Shown: positions 2,475 to 14,265 of the stretch, one piece after another
How positions within the stretch are numbered: the stretch's first letter is position 1
Layout: the number at the start of each line of letters is the position of its first letter
NCBI RefSeq assembly: GCF_001194135.2
Contig: NC_068997.1
Location: 16,885,672-16,923,972, forward strand
Origin: Octopus bimaculoides
Lineage: Eukaryota
Direction: 5' to 3'
Length of the DNA stretch: 38,301 nucleotides
Made by a program: the position numbers and the translations under genes
The notes under the pieces: generated by a model
Seen by the model: the letters and a program-made list of their open reading frames with translations, nothing else
The model's database searches: none
Told to the model about the DNA's origin: nothing

Positions 2475-3280
2475 NNNNNNNNNNNNNNNNNNNNNNNNNN
2501 NNNNNNNNNNNNNNNNNNNNNNNNNNNNNNNNNNNNNNNNNNNNNNNNNNNNNNNNNNNNNNNNNNNNNNNNNNNNNNNNNNNNNNNNNNNNNNNNNNNN
2601 NNNNNNNNNNNNNNNNNNNNNNNNNNNNNNNNNNNNNNNNNNNNNNNNNNNNNNNNNNNNNNNNNNNNNNNNNNNNNNNNNNNNNNNNNNNNNNNNNNNN
2701 NNNNNNNNNNNNNNNNNNNNNNNNNNNNNNNNNNNNNNNNNNNNNNNNNNNNNNNNNNNNNNNNNNNNNNNNNNNNNNNNNNNNNNNNNNNNNNNNNNNN
2801 NNNNNNNNNNNNNNNNNNNNNNNNNNNNNNNNNNNNNNNNNNNNNNNNNNNNNNNNNNNNNNNNNNNNNNNNNNNNNNNNNNNNNNNNNNNNNNNNNNNN
2901 NNNNNNNNNNNNNNNNNNNNNNNNNNNNNNNNNNNNNNNNNNNNNNNNNNNNNNNNNNNNNNNNNNNNNNNNNNNNNNNNNNNNNNNNNNNNNNNNNNNN
3001 NNNNNNNNNNNNNNNNNNNNNNNNNNNNNNNNNNNNNNNNNNNNNNNNNNNNNNNNNNNNNNNNNNNNNNNNNNNNNNNNNNNNNNNNNNNNNNNNNNNN
3101 NNNNNNNNNNNNNNNNNNNNNNNNNNNNNNNNNNNNNNNNNNNNNNNNNNNTATATATATATATATATCATATATATATTGCTTGCATCTGCACGTGCAT
3201 TATGATGTATCTGACTATATCTATATTTACATACATATATCTCTATATAAATTCGCACACACATATATATCATATACGTA

Positions 3281-10970: not shown

Positions 10971-12496
10971 CATACATACATACATACATACATATATTCT
11001 TAAAATTCTTTAATTTTTTTTCAGCCTTAAAGAGCTGCTGCCATGCTGGGGCACCACTGTTGGCTGTGCTACACCATTGTTTGAAACCTCTTCTGATATG
11101 TGACATTTGGCGAATGGGAGAGTCTGATGCTGCTTGTCCCCATCCGTGTTTCCTGTCGTGAAGTAGGTTCATCTGCAACCCTTGACAGGAGAGGAACCAT
11201 ATATTTATATATATATATATATATACATACTGAAATTACTCTAAATGTAACACTTGCGAAAAATGCTGCTCAGTAGGGTCCAAGGTAGAACCATGTGGTT
11301 CCAGACCAAATTACTTAAGCCCACCTGCACTTATTGAAATATGTATTTATCTTTATATATTTGCATGTATCGCTACATACATACGTTCATACATACATGC
11401 TTACACACTGACATTCGCACACATATATATGCACACGTTTATATATATATATCTGTCGTGTGAGCGTGCGCGTGATTATGGATGTGTGAGCGTGTGTGTA
11501 TGTTTCTATGAGTATGTGCAAGTTTGTGCGAGTGTATTCGACAATAACAACTGACAGGGTTTAGAAATAAAAAGTCAAAACAGCTGTATCCGGTTTAATC
11601 AACGTGATTGTCCTATTTGCAATAAGACACTGTTAAAGCTTTAAGCATACGCAACCAAAACTATCATACACTCTCAGTTATTTTGCATACAATAGCGCAA
11701 TAGGTATGTACACACAAAACACCCCTCTCCCCAATACCACACAAACATGCTTACACGCTACTATGTATAGAATGAGGCAACGAAGTAGACACATAATCTT
11801 GCGCGAATGTGTACTCACACGTGCTGACAGAAACCCATCGCATATATATTCATGCATGCATATATACATACATACATACATATATATATANNNNNNNNNN
11901 NNNNNNNNNNNNNNNNNNNNNNNNNNNNNNNNNNNNNNNNNNNNNNNNNNNNNNNNNNNNNNNNNNNNNNNNNNNNNNNNNNNNNNNNNNNNNNNNNNNN
12001 NNNNNNNNNNNNNNNNNNNNNNNNNNNNNNNNNNNNNNNNNNNNNNNNNNNNNNNNNNNNNNNNNNNNNNNNNNNNNNNNNNNNNNNNNNNNNNNNNNNN
12101 NNNNNNNNNNNNNNNNNNNNNNNNNNNNNNNNNNNNNNNNNNNNNNNNNNNNNNNNNNNNNNNNNNNNNNNNNNNNNNNNNNNNNNNNNNNNNNNNNNNN
12201 NNNNNNNNNNNNNNNNNNNNNNNNNNNNNNNNNNNNNNNNNNNNNNNNNNNNNNNNNNNNNNNNNNNNNNNNNNNNNNNNNNNNNNNNNNNNNNNNNNNN
12301 NNNNNNNNNNNNNNNNNNNNNNNNNNNNNNNNNNNNNNNNNNNNNNNNNNNNNNNNNNNNNNNNNNNNNNNNNNNNNNNNNNNNNNNNNNNNNNNNNNNN
12401 NNNNNNNNNNNNNNNNNNNNNNNNNNNNNNNNNNNNNNNNNNNNNNNNNNNNNNNNNNNNNNNNNNNNNNNNNNNNNNNNNNNNNNNATATATATA

Positions 12497-12527
<31 letters not shown>

Positions 12528-12538
12528 GTATGTATATA

Positions 12539-12746
12539 TTTGTGTGTCTGTGTTTGTCCACCAACATCGCTTGACAACCGATGCTGGTGTGTTTACGTTC
12601 CCGTAACTTAGCGGTTCGGCAACAGACATCGATAGTATAAGTACTAGGCTTACAAAGAATGTCTTGGGGGCGATTTTCTCAACTAAAGGCGGTGCTCCAG
12701 CATGGCCACAGCCAAATGACTAAAACAAATAAAAGAATAAAAGAAT
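12539..12746 (+). mobile_element. SINE family A 3' half
   Basis: cttgacaaccgatgctggtgtgtttacg...actaaaggcggtgctccagcatggcc...aaaagaataaaagaata. Confidence 0.92.
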
Positions 12747-12831
12747 ATTTATATATATATATATTTATACGGGAGAGAGAGAAAGTGAGGGAGAGAGAGA
12801 GAGAGCGAAAAGTGAGAATGACATATTGACT

Positions 12832-12893
12832 TCAGATTTTGGCACAAGGCCAGCAATTTCTTGGGAAGGTGTAAGTGGATAATATGGACCCAA
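12832..12893 (-). mobile_element. SINE family B tail fragment
   Basis: ttttggcacaaggccagcaatttc...gtaagtggataatatggacccaa, the same tail type as at 4355. Confidence 0.65.
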
Positions 12894-12902
12894 TAGAGTT
12901 CT

Positions 12903-13000
12903 ATATTTAAGAGATGAGGAATTATTTATATTATTTACATTATTTACATTTGTCGGATGTCTGTCCTCATCTTCTTTGTTGTTAACACAACGTTTCAGCT
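12903..13000 (-). mobile_element. SINE family D, 3' half (hammerhead GAAAC side plus tail)
   Basis: Minus strand reads agctGAAACGTTgtgttaacaac...atgtaaataatgtaaataa. It completes the hammerhead started at 13265-13292. Confidence 0.72.
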
Positions 13001-13292
13001 TCTAAGCAACCTCCTTAGCAGACTGAGTGCAGATATGAATAGCATATGGGAACCAGTATAAAGGAAGGATAGGAAAATTTTAGATTTATAAGCCCTAAAA
13101 TTCACTCCATAATTACCTACGAGCAGATGACGTAGTGGTTAAGAGAGCGGCCTACTAACCCCAAGATTCCAAGTTCGATTCCAAGCAGTCACCTGAATAA
13201 TAATAATAATAGTACCATCGAAAAATACCTTAGGAATGAGAACCCAGGTTCGAAATTTCCCCAAGACACCCGATGAAGGCTGGAGCGTGATC
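12984..13292. ncRNA. Split minimal type I hammerhead ribozyme motif (probably inactive in this copy)
   Basis: Joining 13265-13292(+) to the reverse complement of 12984-13000 gives GACAC-CCGATGA-A-GGCTG-GAGCGTGAT-CAGCT-GAAAC-GTT-GTGTT. Stems I and II pair, and stem III is the palindrome AACGTT. Confidence 0.65.
13121..13292 (+). mobile_element. SINE family D, 5' half (tRNA-like head, (AAT)n, hammerhead CUGANGA side)
   Basis: A box TAGTGGTTAAG at 13133-13143, anticodon-like loop CTACTAA, B box GTTCGATTCC at 13173-13182, then gacacCCGATGAaggctggagcgtgatc. Confidence 0.82.
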
Positions 13293-13471
13293 TTTATTCA
13301 ACATGCGCTGTATGATAACCCGATTATTAATGAATAACGCAAACAATCTCTTGCGTGCGGATTGGTGGGAAACTTCAACTGCAAAAAAAAAAAAAAAAAG
13401 TTTGCTCCTATTTAAAGATATAACTACTCGCTGACGAGTATCTCCAAAATCCTTAATGACATATAATAATC

Positions 13472-13722
13472 TAATGCGCCCTTTTAAAGCCTAGTCAGGC
13501 TCATGAGCCCGATTTCCCGGTTTCTATGGCGTATGTGTTCCCCAGCCGGACGGGACGCCAGTCCATCGCAGCGTTACTCATTTTTGCCAGCTGAGTGGAC
13601 TGGAGCAACGTGAAATGAAGTGTTTTGCTCAAGAACACAACGCGTCGCCCGGTCCAGGAATCGAAACCACAATCTTACGATCATGATGCTGACACCCCAA
13701 CCACTAAGCCACGCGCCTCCAC
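13472..13722 (-). mobile_element. SINE family C, tail type 1
   Basis: Minus strand: A box tggcttagtgg, B box gtttcgattcc, core gttgtgttcttgagcaaaacacttc...ccactcagctggcaaaaatgagt, tail ctgcgatggactggcgtcccgtcc. Confidence 0.88.
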
Positions 13723-13977
13723 AATGGCATATAAGTATTTACTAATTAAAATCAAAATTAATGATTATATTTCACACTCATTGACTTGTACTATTGAAGA
13801 ACCATCATTTACCTCCCCAGCGGCACACAGTGATTCAACCCTGGCATGACAAGGTACTGTATGTATTTTCTACCCAGTAATTTTACTTGCTTAAGGTTCC
13901 ACTCATATTTCCATCATATCATCAGACCCCCGGCCACAAAAGTATATACTGGACAAAGCAATTCTCGGTAGATTAGG

Positions 13978-14265
13978 AGCATTCCGTCGGTTACGACGAT
14001 GAGGGTCCCAGCTGATACGATCAACGGAACAGCCTGCTCGTGAAATTAACGAGCAAGTGGTTGAGTGCTCCACAAACATGTGTACTCTTAATATAGTTCT
14101 CAGGAAGATTCAGCGTGACATAGAGTGTGACAAAATGGCCTTTTGAAATACAGACACAACTCATTTTTGACAGCTGAGTGGACTGGAGCAATGTGAAATA
14201 AAGTGTCTTGCTCAAGGGTACAACTCGTAGCTAGGAATTGAACTCGCGAAGCCACGCGCCTTTAC
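13978..14265 (-). mobile_element. SINE family C, tail type 2, with a deletion in the tRNA head
   Basis: Shares a ~65 bp core (14159-14224) with 13576-13641; the tail is unrelated. Confidence 0.85.

Follow-up and report, generated by a model that had tools for sequence, protein, structure and literature searches.

A decayed and inverted copy of a dispersed repeat

The sequence analysed here (the window) is a stretch of 38,301 nucleotides from contig NC_068997.1 of Octopus bimaculoides; it is a repeat-rich, non-coding region of a draft eukaryotic assembly, with 14 runs of N that total 6,351 bases and dense (TA)n, (GA)n and (CA)n microsatellites. Within it a repeat copy spans positions 12896-13292 (Table 1), and we consider it very probable that this copy is a dead, inverted member of a tRNA-type SINE family whose consensus contains an intact minimal hammerhead ribozyme. 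The copy is decayed and shares ~93% similarity with the consensus of its own family. Open reading frame analysis indicates that the family is non-coding at 12896-13292, and the whole window holds neither a convincing ORF nor an RT ORF. All of the strings quoted in a preliminary description of this DNA, which was made from the letters alone, are present in the window, and its position for the A box (13133) falls inside that box. The end that it assigned to the element, 12903, has to be moved to ~12896, as the read depth drops from ~2,100 to ~130 left of 12895. In contigs from other species, the flanks past 12892-12897 are heterogeneous and AT-rich.

Members of the family are ~280-393 nt long, and the consensus measures 393 nt. 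In order, they comprise an optional 112-nt leader, a tRNA-derived head with A and B boxes, an (AAT)n or (CAA)n microsatellite, a module of ~150 nt, and a tail made of a short hairpin and repeats. The module contains a complete minimal type I hammerhead in the sense orientation, of the kind present in Penelope-like terminal repeats.

Table 1. Features of the repeat copy, with positions numbered from the first base of the window; slashes in sequences mark a boundary or separate paired strands.
Feature	Position	Strand	Description
SINE 3' region and tail	12896..12983	-	In element orientation GTGTT/AACAACAAAGAAGATGAGGACAGACATCCGACAAATG-(TAAATAATG)n-...TTCCTCATCTCTTAAATATAGAACTC
9-nt tandem repeat in SINE 3' region	12921-12950		
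9-bp hairpin in SINE 3' region	12912-12920 and 12964-12972		AGATGAGGA/TCCTCATCT
Hammerhead 3' half	13000-12984	-	AGCT-GAAA-CG-TT-GTGTT; end of stem II 3' strand AGCU (family AGCC), G12-A13-A14, A15.1, C15.2, G16.2, U16.1, U17, stem I 3' strand GUGUU
Predicted cleavage site	between 12989 and 12988		
Inversion junction	13001..13005	.	TCTAA; five bases outside either family segment
5' extension (leader)	13006..13117	+	112 nt; subfamily; runs straight into the SINE head
tRNA-derived head	13121..13192	+	
A box	13128-13138	+	TGACGTAGTGG (family TGGCGTAGTGG)
B box	13172-13182	+	AGTTCGATTCC (family GAGTTCGATTCC, starting at 13171)
(AAT)5 linker microsatellite	13196-13211	+	(CAA)n instead in many other copies
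Body upstream of ribozyme	13212..13264	+	Second B-box-like motif GGTTCGAAAT at 13248-13257
Hammerhead 5' half	13265-13292	+	GACAC-CCGATGA-A-GGCTGG-AGCGTGATC; stem I 5' strand GACAC, core CCGAUGA (family CUGAUGA), bulged A at 13277, stem II 5' strand GGCUGG, loop 2, C starting the stem II 3' strand
Inversion breakpoint	immediately after 13292		

Reconstruction of the family from genomic reads

Raw genomic reads from the same species were aligned to the region at an identity of at least 80%, and depths were summed over both read orientations. The depth is ~5,500 over the tRNA-like head and climbs to ~11,000 over the hammerhead module from 13240 onward, giving a ~10,000-fold basis for the consensus; it is ~1,300 over 13006-13117, ~130 left of 12895 and 0 right of 13300. 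Because ~90% of the family reads extend into sequence unlike that of the window, the repeat is dispersed and exists in thousands of copies. Colinearity of the two hammerhead halves, which lie 290 nt apart on opposite strands in the window copy, was reconstructed from read joints and loose ends. Specifically, an opposite-strand joint connects 13285 to 13000 in 2,686 reads (X23) and 3,303 reads (X24), the loose ends behind 13285 have the consensus GGTATATCAGCCGAAACGTTGTGTTAACAA (3,422 and 6,772 reads), and those behind 13000 read as the reverse complement of AGACACCTGATGAAGGCTGGAGGGTATATC (2,282 reads). The loose-end consensuses of the two sides overlap to form AGACACCTGATGAAGGCTGGAGGGTATATCAGCCGAAACGTTGTGTTAACAA, and the halves are therefore colinear in other copies, as the preliminary description had anticipated.

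That description had also anticipated which letters an intact consensus would carry at the two defective positions, and both expectations were borne out. Position 13271 is T in 94% of the family reads, which yields CTGATGA, and position 12997 is G in 82% of them, which yields CAGCC-GAAAC and restores the G10.1-C11.1 pair. The consensus DNA reads AGACAC-CTGATGA-A-GGCTGG-AGGGTATA-TCAGCC-GAAA-CG-TT/GTGTT and the corresponding RNA AGACAC-CUGAUGA-A-GGCUGG-AGGGUAUA-UCAGCC-GAAA-CG-UU/GUGUU, where the slash marks the predicted cleavage site. The same family occurs under four other organism labels (B, D, E and F); there the head and the 5' half (13123-13285) lie on one contig, and neither the opposite-strand joint nor the hammerhead consensus differs. 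Read depth, consensus and contigs support a high-copy, dispersed, non-coding family in which a head with tRNA-type A and B boxes and a minimal type I hammerhead lie on the same strand.

The consensus contains a minimal type I hammerhead motif

In the consensus hammerhead, helix I has 5 bp (GACAC/GUGUU, with one G-U pair), an A is bulged after position 9 (13277) and followed by G at 13278, and helix II has 6 bp and an 8-nt loop and is closed by G10.1-C11.1. There is no helix III loop; the segment GAAA-CG-UU instead provides the palindrome AACGUU, and GUU serves as the cleavage triplet, in agreement with the NUH rule for such triplets. A minimal-hammerhead descriptor (bulge 1, stem II 6 bp, stem I 5 bp) has one match in the 393-nt consensus and none in 200,000 dinucleotide shuffles. 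Searches with Rfam models gave no hammerhead match in the window at the gathering thresholds or in 12400-13800 at E<=10. Three metagenome contigs with intact minimal hammerheads, run as a control, likewise went undetected at E<=1, so the negative Rfam result is uninformative and does not count against the motif. In folding calculations on the 47-nt core, the hammerhead fold has an energy of -11.5 kcal/mol and lies within 1.4 kcal/mol of the optimum (-12.9 kcal/mol), and the fold predicted for a 107-nt context is without stem I; we do not regard these folds as decisive.

The variation among family reads is unevenly distributed over the ribozyme. Ordinary sites carry 2-5% non-consensus reads, mostly transitions, and CpG sites carry 10-12%. 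Position U7 (13274) has 8.0% T>A and 11.5% T>C, whereas the other core sites have at most 4%, and it is the only non-CpG site of high polymorphism in the 5' half of the hammerhead. Position 7 is the sole freely variable position of the hammerhead core and tolerates any base. The confinement of core variation to this position points to several master lineages in which the remainder of the core stayed under constraint, which makes a cleavage test worthwhile. Two further variants were seen at the 3' half: GTT is missing at the cleavage triplet (12989-12991) in ~5% of family reads, which resembles a 3-nt deletion, and G12 is changed to A (12996) in a further 560 reads, from CpG decay.

Unrelated minimal hammerheads with a bulged A and the core CTGATGA-A-GGCTGC...GCAGCC-GAAACGT are present in metagenome contigs of eukaryotic sources (L001 737-769, L002 696-727 and L003 1849-1881); they serve as comparators only, as the search pattern fixed the core. 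On the strand opposite its hammerhead, L003 has an RT-like ORF at 2567-3163. Scans of bacterial and archaeal genomes and of viral contigs for minimal hammerheads gave no matches.

A tRNA-like head and an optional leader

The paired motif TAGTGG-N(25-45)-GTTCGANNCC occurs once in the 38 kb window, as compared to 0.00 occurrences expected from shuffles. In the consensus head, the A box TGGCGTAGTGG is perfect at 11/11 positions, the B box GAGTTCGATTCC is near-perfect, and the starts of the two boxes are 44 nt apart. The majority letters of the family at 13122, 13126, 13130, 13146, 13151, 13171, 13184 and 13190 repair the head of the window copy and restore a D-stem-like pairing. ARAGORN found no tRNA cloverleaf in the window or the consensus at its default settings, and only poor pseudo-structures at relaxed thresholds. 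A missing cloverleaf is common for old SINE heads, in which it is not a strict requirement. Loose ends before 13216 read TGTTCACCACAACAACAACAA..., that is, the end of the head followed by (CAA)n, in 1,344 reads. Head and hammerhead lie on the same strand of the same molecules, with the ribozyme in the sense orientation relative to the promoter. Judged from its sequence, the family is a tRNA-type SINE by its promoter motifs, size, copy number and dispersion.

The leader (13006-13117) is conserved ahead of about one quarter of the heads, and loose ends behind 13114, 13121 and 13125 read GCCCACGGGCATATGGCGTAGTGGTTAAGAGCGCGGGCTAC, indicating that in other copies the leader runs straight into the head. 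Under one related organism label it extends farther upstream as AAAAGAAGCAGCACATATGCTAGGACACAA, and no internal homology was found between the 5' extension and the hammerhead module. Since a transcript with a tRNA-like +1 start could not carry these 112 nt, a simple Pol III model is difficult to reconcile with the leader, and the subfamily that bears it must come from RNA initiated upstream or from another way of spreading. The element has no TTTT; this Pol III signature is not significant, as 75% of shuffles have none either. That the element may be Pol III-driven, as the preliminary description held, has the A- and B-box motifs as its basis and is weakened by a subfamily with 112 conserved nucleotides upstream of the expected start.

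Origin of the inverted arrangement and loss of the ribozyme

In the orientation of the element, the 5' part of the window copy (13001-13292) is inverted ahead of the 3' part (13000-12896); the break falls within stem II. The end of the inverted arm (...ATC) and the start of the direct arm (AGC...) are neighbouring consensus positions in the 3' strand of helix II, and at its opposite end the inverted arm stops at most 5 nt away from the 5' boundary of the family. Over the junction bases 13001-13005 the read depth is ~6, as compared to ~775 over 13006-13010. The junctions recur in contigs from independent runs of this organism: one (X2) crosses the inversion junction over 12972-13036 with 0 mismatches, and others cover 13287-13460 (X1) and 12837-12919 (X2); the inverted arrangement is thus not an assembly artefact. 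No target-site duplication is visible at 12895/12896 and 13292/13293, and no poly(A) is seen.

Twin priming is known to make 5'-inverted LINE-1 and SINE insertions, and the layout fits second-strand ('twin') priming at insertion. In such insertions, as here, an inverted 5' portion sits next to a 3' portion in direct orientation, the inverted portion extends to the 5' boundary, and neighbouring consensus positions meet where the two portions join; the copy described here differs in that neither a target-site duplication nor a poly(A) is visible. As the copy shows no such duplication, the DNA may equally well have been inverted later. Penelope insertions, too, typically include inverted 5' copies (PMC8557442).

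Two core or stem mutations are present in this copy, U4 to C (13271) and C11.1 to U (12997), the latter leaving a G-U pair. As a result of the inversion and both substitutions, the copy cannot form the ribozyme and is inert. The preliminary description had called it probably dead, and correctly so, although one of the reasons that it gave does not hold: the GUU triplet is the consensus of the family and a permitted NUH triplet rather than a defect.

Evidence bearing on ribozyme activity

In paired-end RNA-seq of the species, reads cross the predicted cleavage site with no pile-up of ends, in a standard library that is poorly suited to detecting cleavage, and no back-joints of the kind expected from circles are found among the best-supported joints. 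Both strands have equal RNA-seq coverage, the pattern that copies embedded in longer transcripts would give. At the DNA level, the family reads include no class of copies that starts at G1.1, the cleavage site. The data on RNA ends, circles and DNA copies offer no support for the suggestion in the preliminary description that the element is ribozyme-processed. Penelope-type minimal hammerheads reportedly cleave poorly in vitro even as dimers (PMC4209133), and we regard cleavage as dimers in vivo as somewhat doubtful for this family. A weak RNA joint between 12938 and 13247, with one extra G, was observed in 14 reads (X41) and 8 reads (X42); it connects the module's 3' and 5' regions and could represent a tandem genomic copy or a circular RNA.

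Relationship to known hammerhead-bearing elements

The sequence features given by Cervera & de la Pena 2014 for Penelope-type minimal hammerheads (PMC4209133) are all present in the consensus. In these ribozymes the core C3 U4 G5 A6 N7 G8 A9 ... G12 A13 A14 is conserved in type I order, helix III is absent or 1 bp, positions 15.2-16.2 are palindromic, and helix I has 4-5 bp. Like them, the consensus hammerhead is of type I, with a CUGAUGA...GAAA core, G10.1-C11.1 and a helix I of 5 bp; it is without a helix III loop and palindromic at 15.2-16.2 (ACGU, extended to AACGUU); and it occurs in thousands of dispersed copies per genome. It differs from them in its helix II of 6 bp with an 8-nt loop and in its GUU triplet. 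The carrier differs too: Penelope-type minimal hammerheads sit in terminal repeats of elements encoding the Penelope RT and a GIY-YIG endonuclease, whereas here the hammerhead is carried by a tRNA-headed SINE. Cleavage of minimal hammerheads as dimers is attributed to Lunse et al. 2016 (cited in PMC6765202).

Two other groups of elements resemble the family. The schistosome Sm-alpha and Sj-alpha elements (Ferbeyre 1998 and Laha 2000, cited in PMC6765202) are likewise short, non-autonomous, high-copy retroposons in which a Pol III-type promoter is followed by a sense hammerhead. The schistosome hammerheads are canonical (PMC4209133) and their elements often form tandem arrays (PMC6765202), whereas the family described here bears a minimal hammerhead of Penelope type, occurs mostly as dispersed copies and belongs to an unrelated host genome. 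Animal non-LTR retrozymes (PMC7229834) share with it a non-coding, hammerhead-bearing and non-autonomous nature and a probable dependence on Penelope machinery; they have been proposed to be non-autonomous Penelope derivatives (bioRxiv 10.64898/2026.07.22.740005). A minority family here is also retrozyme-like, in that tandem or palindromic flanks surround the same module. Retrozymes have tandem repeats and circular RNAs and lack a tRNA-like head (PMC7229834); at our locus there is no tandem array, and the best-supported RNA joints include no circular one. In a search confined to the literature, we found no paper on a cephalopod or other tRNA-headed SINE with a Penelope-type minimal hammerhead, and it is plausible that the family is undescribed.

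A model for amplification of the family

To account for these features, we propose that master copies are transcribed by Pol III from the internal promoter, and that the 3' module with its hammerhead is the product of a capture, either from the terminal repeat of a Penelope-like element or from a unit resembling a retrozyme. Such a module may let the RNA use a Penelope-type reverse transcriptase and endonuclease, the role that a LINE-derived tail plays in ordinary SINEs. In the absence of helix III, the ribozyme would assemble only when two copies pair via the AACGUU palindrome, and would then cut after GUU, such that monomeric SINE RNA would stay whole and could be copied. We assign a probability of roughly 0.6 to the account as a whole, namely a SINE that bears a Penelope-type hammerhead, amplification by Pol III and Penelope RT, and an inert copy at this locus. 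The Penelope partner, taken by itself, is a little less likely than not.

The main, if indirect, reason to think that the module came from a Penelope-like or retrozyme element is provided by the minority family mentioned above. In its members the module is flanked by the perfect palindrome AGGTTCGTCCATCGA/TCGATGGACGAACCT, and farther downstream the 15-mer TCGATGGACGAACCT follows again (positions relative to the window 13242, 12936-12962 and 13058-13069), which suggests head-to-head or tandem units like those of Penelope ends or retrozymes. A head-to-head and tandem look has been described for both the ends of Penelope-like elements and retrozymes (PMC8557442, PMC4209133, bioRxiv 10.64898/2026.07.22.740005). 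The module has about twice the read depth of the head, and part of this excess is probably due to 5' truncation.

We weighed this account against three other explanations. That two unrelated short strings on opposite strands merely happen to spell a hammerhead when joined would be a natural reading of the window copy alone, with its halves far apart, two key positions wrong and an empty Rfam search; the family consensus, which joins the halves and repairs both positions, the read joints and the shuffle test together refute it and leave chance a negligible probability. It is also very unlikely that the family is not a SINE at all, the module being a Penelope terminal repeat or tandem retrozyme next to which the tRNA-like head is an unrelated insertion. 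Such a reading could draw on the twofold depth of the module and on the palindromic or tandem-like flanks that replace the head in a minority of copies. However, thousands of reads (e.g. the 1,344 at the 13216 loose end) and contigs from other species (13123-13285) run from the head or its end through the microsatellite to the module, the head and the ribozyme share a strand, and a twofold excess of the module is what 5' truncation leads one to expect.

A more serious competitor, which we nonetheless consider unlikely, is that a genuine tRNA-derived SINE is moved by a conventional LINE (RTE or CR1) via its tail, and that the module is a captured piece of a Penelope element or retrozyme that no longer cleaves or is of use. 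Consistent with this idea, neither the RNA nor the DNA bears a signature of cleavage, and the tail is of an AT-rich, short-repeat type that LINE-dependent SINEs have as well. The reportedly poor in vitro cleavage of Penelope-type minimal hammerheads, even as dimers (PMC4209133), points the same way. A useless relic is at odds with a core that is intact in the consensus of thousands of copies and common to four other organism labels, with high polymorphism only at N7, where change is tolerated, a pattern pointing to a core retained by master copies, and with the presence of the module outside the SINE in the palindromic and tandem contexts typical of Penelope ends.

Animal genomes contain thousands of minimal hammerheads, most of which have been taken for remnants of truncated Penelope elements (PMC4209133, PMC7761336). 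In the genome studied here, a tRNA-type SINE carries and amplifies a large part of them. If Penelope reverse transcriptase copies the family, that class of retroelement would have a SINE counterpart, and a compact system of ~280 nt would be at hand to ask whether the ribozyme acts in processing, in recognition by the RT, or in nothing. Our furthest-reaching proposal is tentative and, on balance, rather doubtful: the family may be the first of tRNA-headed SINEs to parasitise Penelope-like elements, with a captured Penelope terminal-repeat unit as its 3' module and a minimal hammerhead kept by selection in the master copies, and such SINEs, rather than truncated Penelope elements, may explain many of the 'dispersed' minimal hammerheads in animal genomes.

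Other repeats in the window

A BLAST comparison of 12600-13700 with the window revealed no second copy of the family, the other matches being to two neighbouring SINE families and to microsatellites, and pattern searches of the window for CTGATGA-N(8-38)-GAAAC and for the palindrome AGGTTCGTCCATCGA each returned zero matches. An extremely abundant SINE-like repeat is located at 12600-12747; with a read depth of 40,000-75,000 it far exceeds the 12896-13292 family, and it has seven copies in the window. A further repeat of very high copy number (depth 20,000-44,000) lies at 13562-13672 and also at 14159-14231. The reads behind 13641 continue as the reverse complement of the B-box-like sequence GAGTTCGATTCCCGG, and the 13562-13672 repeat is probably a tRNA-derived SINE on the minus strand.
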